Source of the DNA: Oikopleura dioica
Taxonomy: Eukaryota; Animalia; Chordata
Assembly (NCBI GenBank): GCA_907165135.1
Contig: OU015569.1
Span: 3,348,001-3,412,000, forward strand
Length of the DNA: 64,000 bases
Direction: 5' to 3'
The notes below the pieces were generated by a model, which saw only the letters and a program-made list of their open reading frames with translations, was not told where the DNA came from and did not search any database. Shown here piece after piece: positions 49,961 through 57,245 of this stretch. The stretch's first letter is position 1. The number at the start of each line of letters is the position of its first letter. Made by a program: the position numbers and the translations under genes.

Positions 49961-52900
49961 ATGTGGGCGACCGCCTTAATATTTCTGGGCAGTGTGCATG
50001 GATATTACGGCGAATCGAGTATTAGAGCAAAAGCCTTCTTTAGAAAGAATGTTTTCGAGGGCGAAGATCTCAAGGAATGTTATTTAAAATTTAAAAATGG
50101 ATAGCCTTATCAACTGTACTTTTTTTACATAAATTTATTGTTTTGACAGGTGGTTGAATAGCATTGAACAGATTTCGATCCATAAACTCGGCTGGGACTC
50201 ATCCAAAACATCGAATTTGACTGTCTCGATCGCATTTTGCCGAGGCTGGCCAACGCCACCGCCACTTATGGAAGAAAAAATCACATTTCTACAGAACAGT
50301 GAAACCATGCTCATCGAGAAAACGTTCAATATTTATCAAGGCATTCTTGCCGCAAGAGACGATGATTACTCTGACCCATGTGTTAAATTGGTGTTGGAAT
50401 CTGAAGACGAGGAAGAAGACGACGACGCTTTGAGTTACTACGGGAGAAACGACGGAACTCTTTCGTCGGAAGAAACCTTCGAAATCAAAAAAAGGAGTCG
50501 CATTTTAGTACAGTCTGATAAGGCCAAATACAAGCCAGGGAACACCGTTCAGTTTCGTGTAATCGCAGTCGATGAAGAACTTCGAGCGCTTGATGCCAAA
50601 ATTACTTACGACATAATTTCACCTTCCAATAACAAAATGGCTTCCGTAACAAAACAGAACAACAAGAAAGTGGTTCAAGGATCATTCCAGCTCGACAAAT
50701 TCGCTGAACAGGGAACTTGGGAAGTCAAGATACAGTCGACAGCTATCGATTATGGCGAAGACCACGAGGAGACTTATACATTTGAGGTTGAAGAATATGT
50801 CCTCCCCAAATTCGAAGTCAACATCGTGAGCGAGGGTTATGTCATTGAAGGCGAAGACTTTCCCTTTGTTGTCGAAGCAGAGTACACATTTGGACAGCCG
50901 GTGCCAGGCGATGCCAAAATTGAAGTGACTGAAGTCGCATGCAACACCTGGTACTACCGCGACCCCTGTGATGACTTCGAGAACTGTTCCGAAAAGCGGC
51001 TCGACAAGTCCGTCACAAATTCAGACGGCAGTATTGGCGAGACTCTGAAATATGATGACTGGAAGGGACTCTTTGGCGAGTCTAACTACTACTGCGACAA
51101 ACAGTTCAAGATTCAGGTTTCCTGGGAAGACACCGCGTCGGGAGAAACAATCGACTTCTCCAAGATTATCAAAGTCGAAACTGAGCGTTACCAAATCGAT
51201 ATGCTCTATGAGCCGCAAGTTTATAAGAAGAAGACCGGCCTCAACTACATCGGACAAGTGAAAATGATCGATGGCAGCACCTTGGATAAAGAAGGAGAAG
51301 TGCAAATAACAGTCACATCTCAAAAATATAACTATGACAAGCGCGAATATGAGACAACTACGACTAACGATGCGATCCAACTCAGATTCGAAGATGGAGG
51401 TATTTTTCAGTATAAAATTCCGGAAGAACAATTTGAAATGCTTCTGGATCCAGAAACTAGAAGAGGTTGGAGTGTGAGTTTCGACATGTCCTTTGAGGGC
51501 GTCAAGAAATCGCAGAGCGTTTCAATTCCTGAATCAAACTATGAGCTTGAACTTGAATCTGATGCCGACGGAAAACTAACTCCCGGAACATCCATTGACT
51601 TACGAATAAGGTAATAGTCTTTCTTTATTCATTTTTGACGGTATTCCCTATTCTTAACTCATTACAAAGAGCCGATGTCGACGGTCCTGTTCTTCTTTTT
51701 GTGACAAGCAACGGAAAAGTTCTTGCCGAATATAAAGTCGAAGCGATTCAAAATGTGGAAGTTGTCCAATCGGTCGACATTACTGCTTCCATGATTCCCG
51801 AAGTGAAATTCCTTGTTGTTAGCGGAGCGGCACGTGATAACACGGACTGGGCTGCTGACAGCATCAGCTACTTTGTAGAGACAAATTTTGACAATGAAGT
51901 AGAACTCGCGGCGCCGGAAAAAGGAGAGCTCGGTGAAAACATCGAGATTGGTATTACTGCAGCTGAAAATTCGCCAGTTTATCTTCTTGGTGTTGATAAG
52001 AGCGTTCTCTTACTCAAGGTTAGAAAACCGGACCAAAGATTTTTTGTTCATGAAAAACTTCAGAGTGGAAACGATATTGGAGAAAAACGAGTTTTGGAAG
52101 CTAAACAAGGAGGCCCCGACGAAGAGCATGGCTGGCGACCTTGGCCAATTTGGGGTGGTTGTGGAATCTGGTTTCCTTGGGGTTATGGCTCAAGCGCAGA
52201 GCAAAAGATTGAAGACGCCGGCATGGCCACAATGAAACTCGGAACGGGCTACTATTTGATTTTACTTAGAGTATTCACATCCAATAACTGACTAACAGTT
52301 TAACGTTTTCAGCAATTTTGCTTTAGCAAGCGAGTCGGCACAACTCACTTTTACGTTTAAACTTATCATACTCACACGTTTTAATGCACGAATTTTTTTA
52401 TTTGCGTATCCATGAAATAGGAGAAAACCAATACATGTTCGAGGTCATGTACATGGAGGAACTTAGTGCTAGTAGTGCAGCTTCATACGATATGGCATTT
52501 GGGAATGTAGAAGCGGTCGCTGATGTTTCCGATGCTAAGGTAAAAAAGAAAATTTTGTAGAAAAATGAAATCGCGTAATAGGGGAAAAAATACTTTTTTT
52601 TTCAGATTTTTTATTGAACCTTTTTTTACGACGATATGGATATGATCACTTTTTGCCCCTAATAAGTTCCTAAAAGTAGAAGAAGAATGTACTATGCGAA
52701 ACATTCTCCGATGATGATGAGCAGACCTAGGGTAGCAATGAATATGCGGCCTAACTCGGTATTGAAGATTTTGAAACGATGATTTAATCAGTAATTTACT
52801 TATTTTGATTAAAAATGATTTTCACGTGATTTCGGGAAACACATTTCGGCGAAAGATGCAATATTGGTCCATTCAGTACGGTCTAAACGTTTGTGGGTAG

Positions 52901-55900
52901 AACTTTTACCGTAATTCTCTTTGATTTTACCTACTGTTACAGTATTAACTGTAGCCAAAACAACAATCAATACAACAAGCAATAACTAACGATATCTTAC
53001 TGTTTCATTTTTTTTTGTAGTTTTTTAGACTTTAGTTAGCGAATAGGAACAACTCACTAAATTAACCTTGCTAACACGTTTTATTGCACGAGTTTTTGAT
53101 TTGCGTATCCACGAAATAGGAGAAAACCGATACATTGTCGAGGTCATGTATGAGAGACCAGTTAGTGAAAGCTTTGCTGCAGCATCAGACGACACAGCTT
53201 TTGAGAATGTAGAAACTGATAAGGTAAAATGGAAATATCCTAGAAAAATGAAATCAATTGGATAAATTAAACGATTTTAAAAGACATAATGACCTGAAAA
53301 AGTCAAAGAAAACCACGCCAAATGGGGAAAAATTATCATAACGTAATCTAGCCTGAAATTAGAAAAAAGGAAAAAAATAGAATTCATGTATAGGTACCTA
53401 AGTCTAGGTAGAAGTATGAATTCAAGTCCCATGAGCTATGAGATGAGCTATGGGGATTATAGCTGGGAAGAAGTAAGTTTCCATCAGGTGTCTGAAAATG
53501 GTTTTCCCATTAGCGGTGTTTCATAATTCAGAAAAAGGTGCTGTGAATTAAACGTGGAAAGTTTTTTTTTGAATCCTGAGAAAGTTCTCTGAGAGGGCCG
53601 ACTCTAGCCTTGACTCTAGCCTGAAAACAGAAAAGAGGGAATTTTTACTAGGCATGCCCTTATTCTTATCGAATAGTGCTTCTATGGATGGGGGATGGAA
53701 GGGCATGGGGCGTATAATTGGCGGCGCATCTGCGCGTGTAAGTTTTCTTCGCGGTGTCTGAAAATTGGTGTGCAAAAAAAGAATAGCGTGTGTTATATAT
53801 TTTTATCGAATTACAAATGACGATTTAAAACGGTTTAAATATCAATAAATCAATTTTTTGGTGCTTACAAATGCTAAAGCCTAAATAAGATAATGCCCCG
53901 ATGATAATGTACAAAGAGATGTCATACGGTCCGGTTTATGCCGAAATGGTAACTTTCACAAAAATGTGTTGTTTGTGATTGTTTTGCTTGATTCTCATGA
54001 TCATCTACTATCTCATCATTCATGTTACGAATATTCATTTCATTTGACCGGTGTTTACTTGTGGTGTGATTACCTACTTATCGAAAACAAAGATTTAACA
54101 AATGTTTAAGATGCCTGCGCCCGGTGGATCAAGCGCTCCGGAACCAGAAACGAGAAAGAAATTCCCAGAAACCTGGATTTGGTCTTCCGTTGAAACAGAC
54201 GAAAGTGGAAAAGCTTCAGTTATGAGTTAAAAAGCAGTCTTCGAGACTCGAAATCTTATTTCGAGTTTGTCCTAATTACAAGTTGATAACTTTTTAAAAG
54301 TGAATGTCGAAGTTCCGGACACGATCACTTCATGGATAGTGACTGGATTTTCATTGTCTGGCGAAAAGGGCCTCGGGTATCAAAAGGAGCCTTCGAAAAT
54401 TGTTGCCTTCAGAGATTTTTTCGTCAAACTTGAACTGCCCTATTCAATCAAGCAAAACGAAATGTTCCTTGTCAAGGCCGTTGTCTTCAATTACCTTGGA
54501 CAGGAAGTGGAAGCCGATGTCACTCTTGACCTTGCCCCCGGAATGGATCTGCTTGCTGATGAACTAACTAAACGAGTTTCTATCAAGGCACAAAACAGAT
54601 CTCCAGTCGGCTGGCCGATCATCGTAGATTCTAGCGGTGTCGTCCCAATCAAAGTCAAAGCAGTGGTCGTTGGAAACCTCGCGGGTGATGCTCTAGAAAG
54701 ACCTCTGATTGTCAAGCCAGAGGGAATTCCTCGAACAAAAGCCTTCAATCTTCTCCTCAAAGACGACGATGCTGATGATATTGAAGTTGATTTTCCACCA
54801 AACGTTGTCGCTGACTCCGAGCGAGTGGAAATGCGTATCTTTGGAGACATTCTTTCCAACACCTTGCAAAACATTGACGGTCTGTTGAAGATGCCATACG
54901 GTTGTGGAGAACAGAACATGATTAACTTCGCCCCTGCGGTATTTATCTACGATTATTTGGAGAAAAAGATGGAACTTACTGAAGAGATAGAAGAGAAGGC
55001 TTCGCGCATCATTCAATCTGGCTACCAACGCGAGATGACCTACGAACACAGCGACGGTGGTTTTTCAGCTTTTGGCGAGAACTCATACTCAAAATCAAAG
55101 GCAGCCACGCTTTTGACCGCCTTCGTTGTCAAATGCTTTAGAGCGGCTGAGAAGTTATCTAAAAAATTCATCCCAGATGGAGTAGTCGAAAAGCAGTTAG
55201 ATTTCTTGGTCACAAGATTCAACACGGAAACAGGTCAATTTGAGGAAGACGGTAAAGTCTTCTCTAGCTACATCAAGGGTGCTCTGGATGCTGATGGAGA
55301 CAGCGCAATCACAGCATATACCCTCATTCCCTTTATTGAAGGCGGAATTCTTCCTAAATACAGTGATTTGGTAGACAAGGCACTTGACACTCTGGAAGCC
55401 GCCATTCCAACGAGTACAAATCATCACACTCTTTCGTTGATTGCTTATAACTTATTCCTTGCTGGAAGAGAAAGCGCCAGTGCAGCGATGGCTAAGTTGG
55501 AGACTTTTGCTAAGAACGAACCAGGCAGTACTTATTGGACAACTGAATCACGCTACTCCGGAGAAGAGCCATCCGTTGAAATTTCAAGTTATGCATTGAT
55601 GAGTTATGCAAGCGGCGATGAAGACTTTTTACCGGTTTTCCGGGGAATCATGTCTCAACTCTCAGAAACCGGTGGTTTTAAATCCACTCAAGATACCGTT
55701 ATTGGTCTCCAGGCTATCAGTGACCGCGCAAGCTTCTTCGTCAGTCCAGAAGACAATCTATCGATCGGAGCAATGCTCGACTCTGAGACTGATCTGTTCA
55801 GCTGGGTACCTGACGCACTCACTCCTGCAAATTCACAAGTGGTGCAGATCAAAAACGTTGAGCTCAGCGGGGAAGGACTTTTTGGAATCACGTCTTCTGG

Positions 55901-56618
55901 CAAAGGAACTGCCATGATTCAAGTTATCATTCATTACAACACCAAAGACACGTCAAACGATCCCTTCGACGTCGACTTCTTTTTCACAGAAATACCGGAT
56001 AAGCGAAAACGAAAGCGACGAAGTGCAGATATACCAGATTCCGACTTCTGCATCCAAGTTACAACAAAAGCGACAGATGTAAGTGATTGATATTTTTTGG
56101 CGATTAAAATGCTTTTGATTTCAATATCATATTTTTTCAAGAACGAACAATACCGCGTCCCCGACGGAATGAGTTTGGTCACAATAGAGCATCCATCTGG
56201 CTTCGCGCATTTGTCGGTAGAAGCAACTGACGGCTCGGATGAGCCAGAAAAAGTGGAAATTAATGCCGATCGAACTGTTCTCTACTACAACGATCTTGCG
56301 AATGCTGTCGGCGCTTCCGTTTGCCTCACAAAGATTCAGCCTGTCGAAAACCCCAAACCAGTGTACATTTCAGTCCAAGACTACTACAACCCTGACGCCG
56401 AAACAACAACTGAAGTTGTCCTGCGTGACCTTCAAAAAGTAATCTAGAATAAGAAAGCTCCACTCATGATCATTTAGGAAACTCCCCTATGCGACCTCTG
56501 TGGCGACTTCTGCGCCCTTGACTTTTGCGTTTCTGAACCTGCACCTGGTGGATCTCAGAGCTTTGGTAATATGAATATGCCTTTATTCGCGTTGGTGATT
56601 ATCTATAATTTCTGCTGA
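49961..56618 (+). CDS. CD109: CD109/TEP-type thioester protein (alpha-2-macroglobulin family), probably GPI-anchored
   Basis: Signal MWATALIFLGSVHG; QSDKAKYKPG; FEVEEYVLPKFEV; LLGVDKSVLLL; RKKFPETWIW; VPDTITSW; thioester GCGEQNM (54900-54920); GGFKSTQDTVIGLQA; polybasic KRKRKRR; terminal CDLCGDFC and hydrophobic GPI-like signal. Confidence 0.9.
52421..52539 (+). CDS. Bait cassette exon A: (G)ENQYMFEVMYMEELSASSAASYDMAFGNVEAVADVSDAK
   Basis: AG/GT bounded, 119 nt (3n+2), phase 1 to 0, open. Confidence 0.8.
52667..52758 (+). CDS. Bait cassette exon B: (V)PKSRRRMYYAKHSPMMMSRPRVAMNMRPNS
   Basis: AG/GT bounded, 92 nt, phase 1 to 0, open. Confidence 0.65.
53120..53223 (+). CDS. Bait cassette exon C: (G)ENRYIVEVMYERPVSESFAAASDDTAFENVETDK
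   Basis: AG/GT bounded, 104 nt, phase 1 to 0; paralog of exon A. Confidence 0.8.
53408..53472 (+). CDS. Bait cassette exon D: (G)RSMNSSPMSYEMSYGDYSWEE
   Basis: 65 nt, GTAAGT donor, phase 1 to 0; alternative in-frame acceptor at 53381. Confidence 0.75.
53652..53737 (+). CDS. Bait cassette exon E: (G)MPLFLSNSASMDGGWKGMGRIIGGASAR
   Basis: 86 nt, GTAAGT donor, phase 1 to 0; alternative in-frame acceptor at 53631. Confidence 0.75.
53890..53948 (+). CDS. Bait cassette exon F: (D)NAPMIMYKEMSYGPVYAEM
   Basis: 59 nt, GTAACT donor, phase 1 to 0. Confidence 0.7.
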
Positions 56619-56939
56619 TTGTGGACAGATTTTCTTTTGTCTTATTTATTTTTACTTACTTTCTTGTAAATCCCCTGTTTTCTTATTTTTCCACATTTTT
56701 TTACTGTACATATGAATCATATGATATGATCCACCGAGCTATTCCAAGAAGGTATTTTAGATATGCCGTAGATAATATGTGTTAGTTTTCTTTAAAATAA
56801 CTAATATAGAAACGAGTTAACCCGTATTTGAAAAAAGAGCAATCAAACTAGATGCATGTTTCACATTTGAAATATGAATGCAGATTTCTTGACACGAATT
56901 GACGATGTTATTTTGTAGTATCCACTCTTATCATTATTT

Positions 56940-57245
56940 CAGTTCAACCTCCTTTGCCGCCCCTCCCTTCTGAAATCGACAGTGGATGGATCAAGCCACC
57001 AAGTTTTATCCAGCTTCCGGAAGATCTGACGATCGTAATGTACCATTAAAAACCACATAAATCATCATACATTTCAGATCCGTGATGCGAACAATTGGAA
57101 CACTGACAAGTTTGCTGATTATGTTGTTAAGCTACGCAAGCGCATTCTCAAGCGTTCTCCCCATAGTTATTCAAGAAGTGTCATTAGAGAGTTGGAGGAA
57201 CATCTCAACATGTTCAAAATCATCCTCGACAAGATGCTCAATTAG
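56940..57245 (+). CDS. Small hypothetical protein (start exon uncertain)
   Basis: Exons VQPPLPPLPSEIDSGWIKPPSFIQLPEDLTI and IRDANNWNTDKFADYVVKLRKR...DKMLN*. Confidence 0.45.

Follow-up and report, generated by a model that had tools for sequence, protein, structure and literature searches.

A stretch of 64,000 nucleotides (nt) from the tunicate Oikopleura dioica (contig OU015569.1, positions 3,348,001 to 3,412,000; the window, whose own numbering is used throughout) contains a gene for a thioester protein (TEP) of the alpha-2-macroglobulin superfamily. In this gene six adjacent alternative exons, here called cassettes A to F, occupy one position upstream of the exon that holds the sequence FPETW. 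The length of every cassette is 3n+2 nt, all six lead from phase 1 to phase 0, and the whole array is packed within 1.9 kb. It is very probably a frame-locked cluster of alternative bait exons that are spliced one at a time. For three of the cassettes, A, B and F, one-at-a-time use is seen in RNA at both junctions. The array stands above chance by its RNA joints, by the open stretches of phase 0 that precede its donors and by its conservation in relatives; the joints and the comparison with relatives weigh most.

Cassettes and reading frame

An earlier note on the window, made from the sequence alone, had described six open AG..GT exons between two constitutive exons of this gene. The description is borne out by the sequence: at the coordinates first read, each cassette is preceded by AG, followed by GT and open in phase 1. 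The lengths were first read as 119, 92, 104, 65, 86 and 59 nt. With corrected boundaries they are 119, 92, 104, 110, 107 and 59 nt, and both sets are 3n+2 throughout. The correction concerns cassettes D and E, whose donors remain as first read but whose starts move upstream, that of D to 53363 on the strength of an RNA contig and that of E probably to 53631. The new start of E is suggested by the paralogy of the D and E flanks and by conservation of the acceptor in a second haplotype, represented by L001. (L001 and L002 are metagenome contigs from Tara Oceans with a DNA identity of about 92% to the window.) The slot of E in L001 is filled by another cassette, which uses the same acceptor. Its first three residues are those of D and E as translated from their upstream acceptors, a further support for 53631.

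Each single cassette keeps the reading frame between the upstream and the downstream exon. A premature stop codon results, on the other hand, when no cassette is included, when any of the 15 pairs is joined, and for the triple ABC and the quadruple ABCD. The frame rule set out in the earlier note, that one cassette keeps the frame while none, two or three break it, agrees with this check.

Open phase-0 stretches of 213, 177, 126, 165 and 60 nt precede the donors of A, C, D, E and F, respectively, whereas the other two frames at the same five donors are open for at most 61 nt. The scan covered donors of the type GTAA[A/G/C] only, and the donor of cassette B, GTATT, falls outside it. As a control, all open AG..GT pairs were also counted in each class of phase and length. 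There were 45 pairs for the class to which the cassettes belong and 24 to 68 for the others, and because the class is not separated from the rest, the raw count was dropped as evidence. A weak seventh candidate exon at 52856-52896 was rejected as well; it has no RNA depth and is broken by a 41-nt insertion in the second haplotype.

RNA joints

The RNA evidence consists of assembled contigs of one marine plankton metatranscriptome (X1), taken at a likeness cut-off of 90%. In these contigs A, B and F are each joined directly to the upstream exon, at 52241, and to the downstream exon, at 54111. An allelic variant of the 3' end of B is also joined to 54111. The depth of B and F is similar to that of A in the same sample. 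At this low depth, no joint between one cassette and another was seen among the X1 contigs.

The contig for cassette D has 17 letters of the upstream exon followed by a match to 53354-53470, in which the first nine matched bases are the misaligned end of the upstream exon. Such a contig is best explained by a junction from 52241 to 53363, which makes D 110 nt long, although this joint is not listed directly. D is seen at its 5' junction only, as the contig does not cover the donor junction, and C and E have no depth. The joints from the upstream exon through a cassette to 54111 that the earlier note had predicted are therefore complete for three cassettes, half complete for D and at zero depth for C and E.

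The earlier note had left the end of the upstream exon at either 52241 or about 52247. The RNA joints use 52241, and the exon ends at the same place in complementary DNA (cDNA) of sister lineages; 52247 found no support. The phase-0 start of the downstream exon at 54111 is confirmed both by the sequence and by the joints. Coordinates of the gene, its cassettes and the flanking exons are collected in Table 1.

Table 1. The thioester-protein gene, its alternative cassettes and the exons that flank them (window coordinates)
Feature	Position	Strand	Length	Character	Evidence
Whole thioester-protein gene	49961-57242	+			annotated proteins P0269 and P0268 match at ~100%; Pfam domains; GCGEQ
Constitutive upstream exon	52062-52241	+		ends in phase 1 on G	joint 52016/52062; joints from 52241 to A, B and F
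Cassette A	52421-52539	+	119 nt	acidic peptide	joints 52241>52421 and 52539>54111; conserved in L001 and L002
Cassette B	52667-52758	+	92 nt	Arg/Met-rich; unannotated	joints 52241>52667 and 52758>54111; conserved in L001 and L002
Cassette C	53120-53223	+	104 nt	paralogue of A	splice sites kept in L001 with an in-frame 6-nt difference
Long form of C	53047-53223	+	177 nt	in-frame	annotated after A in transcript t2
Cassette D	53363-53472	+	110 nt	first read as 53408-53472; unannotated	contig with upstream-exon letters and 53363-53470
Cassette E	53631-53737	+	probably 107 nt	first read as 53652-53737; unannotated	no RNA coverage
Cassette F	53890-53948	+	59 nt	Met/Tyr-rich; unannotated in the Okinawa lineage	joints 52241>53890 and 53948>54111
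Constitutive downstream exon	54111-54219	+		phase 0 entry; holds FPETW	acceptor 54111 used by A, B and F; lies directly behind the bait regions in alignments to CD109 and A2M

Flanking splice sites

The intron after the upstream exon opens with a non-canonical GA at 52242, and a GC donor after 52247 is not used. Genomic copies of the sister lineages also have GA at this place. The GA donor is a constant feature of the Okinawa and the Bergen-like lineages (52242-52243 in the window; 3155-3156 in L005, a Bergen-like genomic contig), whereas the donors of the cassettes are all GT: five are GTAA[A/G/C] and that of B is GTATT. The equivalent upstream donor in a more distant homologue, L007, also looks non-canonical.

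On the other side of the array, an 81-nt joint places the 3' end of the downstream exon at about 54219 and not at 54226. The intron in question (54219-54300) appears as an 81-nt skip in the metatranscriptome, and its ends cannot be GT..AG; they are either GT..AA or TT..AG. The skip yields the residues S-V-N-V, as in all sister lineages. The public annotation has instead a GT..AG intron at 54227-54300, with two residues more. In L005 there is no intron after the FPETW exon.

The public annotation and the case for mixed use

The gene is annotated as XSR.g14204 of O. dioica OKI2018_I69, with two transcripts whose proteins both map to the window at about 100%, so that the window comes from the Okinawa lineage of O. 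dioica or from something nearly identical. Transcript t1 contains A as its only cassette and transcript t2 contains A together with the 177-nt form of C, so that four of the six cassettes (B, D, E and F) are missing from the public annotation.

Several observations weigh against the use of single cassettes throughout the array. The RNA data are contigs of a single metatranscriptome, at a depth of 2-4x, which pool many animals and drop rare forms, and they contain neither C nor E. They also contain a low-depth joint that leads from 52241 straight to 54111. This joint may represent true skipping, or a contig in which unaligned letters between the two sides are those of a cassette that failed to align. 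Three bulk RNA-seq runs that carry the species label (X13-X15, 2026) gave 0-3 reads. The few reads that fall on the gene are only 90-95% alike, at the 90% likeness cut-off, and the runs probably come from another cryptic lineage, or else the gene is barely expressed there; with so few reads they are no test of cassette use. Finally, transcript t2 joins A to 53047-53223, in phase 0 to phase 0, a tandem use of the kind that the earlier note itself had named as counter-evidence.

Transcript t2 leads to another reading of the array, possible but rather unlikely, in which one-at-a-time use holds for A, B, D and F whereas C, and perhaps E, are used differently. C could be an optional in-frame addition after A, reached through the acceptor of 53047, or a duplicate that is decaying and seldom spliced. 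RNA-seq hints were used in building the annotation (PMC8008620), which makes expression of C in the Okinawa culture probable. The 177-nt form is kept as a possible exon because it is open in L001 too, with an in-frame difference of 12 nt. Nevertheless, the 177-nt exon directly follows a stop codon, the AG of which acts as its acceptor, and it looks like a compromise made by a gene finder in fitting two hinted exons into one frame. Besides, the 104-nt form of C has the same acceptor context as A. The zero depth of C and E in X1, which might seem to favor mixed use, is uninformative, because the sampled population looks L001-like, with variants typical of that haplotype: its C allele is 88% alike, below the cut-off, and its E slot holds the other cassette. 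Direct splicing to the constitutive exons is seen for A, B and F at both junctions, and for D at its 5' junction. The lack of joints between cassettes at this low depth and the single-cassette cDNAs of sister lineages agree with mutual exclusivity, and t2 does not.

A further point against strict exclusivity is that no RNA-pairing signal that would enforce it was found in the first and last introns by duplex and k-mer scans. The k-mer complementarity of the first and last introns with all inter-cassette introns, examined as docking and selector pairing, was no better than in shuffled sequences, and the energies of predicted long RNA duplexes were not significant. Short inverted repeats in the array were considered as pairing elements and, given these null results, are treated as chance. 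Crowding of splice sites is an unlikely cause of exclusivity, because the introns of the array, at 127-361 nt, are longer than the neighboring introns of 45 and 81 nt. As far as can be judged from the sequence, the frame-lock is the only visible device for exclusivity.

Domains and family placement

The Pfam domains follow each other along the exons in the order MG2, MG3, A2M_BRD, A2M, TED_complement and A2M_recep, which is the order of the alpha-2-macroglobulin superfamily. The thioester motif GCGEQ is intact in the exon at 54300-56090 and is present in every lineage protein compared. The N-terminus of the protein is hydrophobic, as judged by eye. The best match among solved structures is human CD109 (PDB 8S3O, 9FX2/9FX3), ahead of A2M and the mosquito TEP1. 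In a phylogenetic tree, however, the appendicularian sequences group together on a long branch that falls outside the A2M/A2ML1 group as well as the group of CD109 and insect TEPs. No glycosylphosphatidylinositol (GPI)-type C-terminal signal was found in the full-length cDNA proteins, which have a hydrophilic end and lack a hydrophobic tail. The identification as a CD109/TEP protein in the earlier note is right with respect to the thioester protein and the closest match, but the tail does not agree with membership in the CD109 group, and the tree does not place the protein firmly there. On this combination of a best match to CD109 with a position outside both groups and no GPI-type tail, the gene is filed, provisionally, as a CD109-like, non-complement thioester protein of the alpha-macroglobulin type.

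Two other features of the protein were recorded. The receptor-binding domain is followed by a C-terminal extension of about 110 residues (window 56582-57242), which opens with a Cys-rich stretch and is supported by the full-length cDNA proteins of sister lineages. A polybasic run followed by Ser, conserved in all O. dioica lineages, lies near the position of the CD109 furin site in the last MG domain.

Bait position and proposed function

The alignment of the protein to CD109, A2M and A2ML1 breaks off ahead of the cassette and is taken up again about 10 residues short of FPETW. The bait of native CD109 is an unmodelled stretch, Asp649-His689, the cleavage of which triggers a conformational change and the thioester trap (PMC12927315). 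The gap in the alignment matches this unmodelled bait, so the cassettes code for the bait, or cleavage, loop. The bait had been placed before FPETW in the earlier note, and the alignment supports this position.

The following course of events is proposed. The product would be a secreted thioester protein belonging to the alpha-2-macroglobulin superfamily, and among solved structures human CD109 is nearest to it. At 52241 the upstream exon ends after the first base of a codon, and at 54111 the downstream exon starts a new one. Splicing would join the upstream exon to one of the six cassettes and then that cassette to the downstream exon, so that each messenger would carry one of six very different peptides, 20-40 residues long, just before FPETW. 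As every cassette is 3n+2, messengers with none or with two to four cassettes would run into an early stop, and only those with a single cassette would give the full protein. Attacking proteases would cut the bait loop and thereby trigger the thioester trap. Alternative cassettes should widen or tune the range of proteases answered, because the bait loop is the part that such proteases cut.

The cassettes of the D/E family have a peculiar motif: R-I-I-G-G in E of the window, R-I-L-G-G in L005 (3973-4064) and M-I-V-G-G in another contig, L006 (1-100). These motifs are similar to the site at which zymogens of chymotrypsin-fold proteases are cleaved for activation. It may be speculated that cassettes of this family are decoys for zymogen-activating proteases. 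In addition, Met and Tyr are unusually frequent in many cassettes (for example B and F in the window, and those of L007 and of P0157), and one possibility is that they are oxidation-sensitive baits.

The same splicing could serve another job. Instead of being the bait of an inhibitor, the loop might be where an opsonin-like TEP is activated, as happens in insect TEP1, and the cassettes would then determine by which host or microbial proteases the protein is switched on. This assignment is tenable, if on balance doubtful. The tree places the protein firmly with neither CD109 nor A2M, insect-type TEPs are also close by sequence, and the variable exons of the snail TEP2 and CD109 have been described as holding the proteolytic cleavage site. 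The best matches, however, are to CD109, which is characterized as a monomeric trapping inhibitor. Both jobs begin with cleavage of the loop, and sequence alone cannot separate them. The inhibitor bait and the opsonin switch make equal use of alternative cassettes spliced one at a time.

Relatives, origin and turnover

The earlier note had called for a comparison of cassettes in other strains and appendicularians. Arrays of 3n+2 cassettes are present in L001/L002, in L005 and in L007/L008, with turnover between them. L001 and L002 keep cassettes A, B, C and D together with their splice sites. The indels in the introns measure 1-55 nt, and the sole exon indel is the in-frame 6 nt in C; in L001, 108 of the 110 bases of D are identical. 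The E slot of L001 is the exception. It has the same acceptor and a similar donor, GTAAGTT, but an unrelated cassette of 101 nt, also 3n+2 (L001 2205-2305), which has only the first ~20 nt and the donor in common with E of the window and no match elsewhere in the window. This shows presence/absence variation of cassettes between haplotypes.

The Bergen-like contig L005, at 86% protein identity, shares the GA donor and contains five cassettes, which measure 101, 77, 56, 92 and 56 nt. All five are 3n+2, the first being A-like and the last F-like. Metatranscriptome cDNA contigs with the same flanking exons contain single cassettes, A-like in L012 and F-like in L013 and L014, and the annotated Bergen protein CBY07776.1 carries an F-like cassette. 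The D/E-family cassette of L006 is seen at its downstream junction only, because the contig starts inside the cassette.

L007/L008, a more distant homologue with 46% identity, branches in the tree as the sister of the O. dioica sequences. Its equivalent space of 1.9 kb has five exons, all 3n+2, for which chance gives approximately (1/3)^5, or ~0.004; these exons are defined only by the sequence AAACTTC, the first AG after it and the next strong donor. P0157, a cDNA of a form related to L007/L008, has one short Met-rich cassette at the same place. Contigs of a homologue at 50% identity (L003/L004) are too short for the array to be judged, and no further isoforms turned up when the bait end of a cDNA protein was the query of a protein search.

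The AAACTTC motif lies 2-6 nt before the acceptor AG of the five candidate cassettes (L007 6338-7660, and likewise in L008). There are six copies in the 1.9-kb stretch compared with five in the other 16.5 kb of the L007 contig. In the window, the constitutive intron of 45 nt closes with a similar sequence, AAACTTCAG (52053-52061), and motifs of this kind may be a general 3' splice signal of appendicularians.

Traces of duplication are visible within the array. A and C, about 700 nt apart, are duplicates at 80-91% identity, and the copies take in ~170 nt of the intron upstream and 30 nt of that downstream. D and E have flanks that form a tandem duplicate with a spacing of 266 nt, and B and F share a short motif. 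On this pattern the array grows by local tandem duplication (A/C and D/E) and turns over fast between lineages. Its differences between cryptic O. dioica lineages make it a candidate locus for a host-microbe arms race in a key marine grazer.

A bolder interpretation can be offered only tentatively and is, on present evidence, unlikely: that this chordate possesses a fast-evolving, population-polymorphic library of bait exons with haplotype-specific cassettes, some of them mimics of the R-I-[I/L]-G-G activation site of serine-protease zymogens, and decoy sets particular to each animal, evolved by appendicularians independently of those of insects and molluscs. If true, each animal would have its own protease decoys against microbial or prey proteases, and splicing-based diversification of TEPs would have been converged upon repeatedly.

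Pooling of animals raises a different question, namely whether the cassette is fixed by haplotype or individual, the variety in the metatranscriptome being that of many animals with one cassette each. All the RNA evidence comes from pooled plankton, and the arrays do differ between haplotypes, as the E slot demonstrates. Yet more than one intact cassette with good splice sites is present in the window genome, in L001 and in L005 alike, several cassettes of one lineage occur in one sample, and the arrays of the snail and the scallop are spliced within individuals. A fixed cassette per animal is accordingly improbable. That the cassettes other than A are splicing noise or pseudo-exons is hardly credible at all: A alone is common to both annotated transcripts and the others have low RNA depth, but B and F are as deep as A in the same sample, frame, phase and splice sites are kept by all cassettes across haplotypes and lineages, and the Bergen annotation as well as independent cDNAs use an F-like cassette and not an A-like one.

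Comparison with known systems

Alternative splicing of bait exons is known from Drosophila Tep2, with five isoforms, and from the A2M of shrimp and tick (PMC7016707 and its citations). In the snail Biomphalaria glabrata, BgTEP2 has twelve mutually exclusive exons, BgCD109 has eight predicted variants, and BgA2M is a further case (PMC7016707 and its citations). The scallop Chlamys farreri has CfTEP, with six mutually exclusive exons and seven isoforms, whose use reportedly varies with sex and with pathogen challenge (as cited in PMC7016707). The two cases named in the earlier note, Tep2 and the tick A2M, were right, but the list was too short in leaving out the scallop and snail arrays of 6 to 12 exons. 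Its remark that it knew of no such description in tunicates agrees with full-text searches, incomplete in coverage, in which no report was found for Oikopleura, tunicates, amphioxus or sea urchin.

The snail genes are the closest in design. BgTEP2 and BgCD109, like the Oikopleura gene, have tandem alternative exons for the hypervariable, or bait, part, which encode peptides varying in length and composition. The BgTEP2 exons also fall into one non-zero class modulo 3 (3n+1 from the listed coordinates) and are frame-locked too. They are nevertheless 136-232 nt long and spread over ~30 kb, compared with 59-119 nt within 1.9 kb in Oikopleura. Furthermore, FxETW lies inside the variable exons of the snail, whereas FPETW is in the constant exon of Oikopleura. 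Because the exon boundaries differ, independent origin, or convergence, is favored. CfTEP, as far as it is described in the citing paper, has the same number of cassettes as Oikopleura, six, at the same functional position. The arthropod genes, Drosophila Tep2 and the A2M of tick and shrimp, were compared by description; in them, too, alternative splicing is limited to the exon that codes for the bait.

Human CD109 has the same domain order, the thioester motif and a polybasic site in the region of the last MG domain, and the Oikopleura cassettes fall at its flexible, unmodelled bait. The Oikopleura protein differs in its hydrophilic C-terminal extension of ~110 residues and in the lack of a GPI-type tail. 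Human CD109 is not known to have more than a single, fixed bait.

Exclusive splicing backed by reading frame has a parallel in FGFR2, where the IIIb and IIIc exons form a frame-locked pair. Their lengths are not multiples of three, and double inclusion or skipping leads to a premature stop. That pair has known tissue-specific regulators, whereas Oikopleura has six cassettes and no regulator is known. The Dscam type is a multi-exon cluster of mutually exclusive exons in an immune-related gene, as is the Oikopleura array, but it depends on docking and selector pairing of the RNA, for which neither the first nor the last intron of the Oikopleura array has complementarity above that of shuffles. 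O. dioica can be kept in culture, its life cycle is short and its genome is very compact. A 1.9-kb array in such an animal is tractable for studying how a cassette is chosen without obvious RNA pairing, and how the sequence of a bait sets protease specificity.

The mechanism is therefore of a known kind, and the novelty of the Oikopleura array is phylogenetic, not mechanistic: it lies in the occurrence in a chordate, in the very compact form and in the polymorphism. Splicing-based variety of the bait loop has been treated as a feature of protostomes, and its occurrence in a tunicate, a member of the sister group of vertebrates, extends it to the chordates. The exon boundaries, being unlike those of the snail array, point to repeated independent evolution of the same solution.

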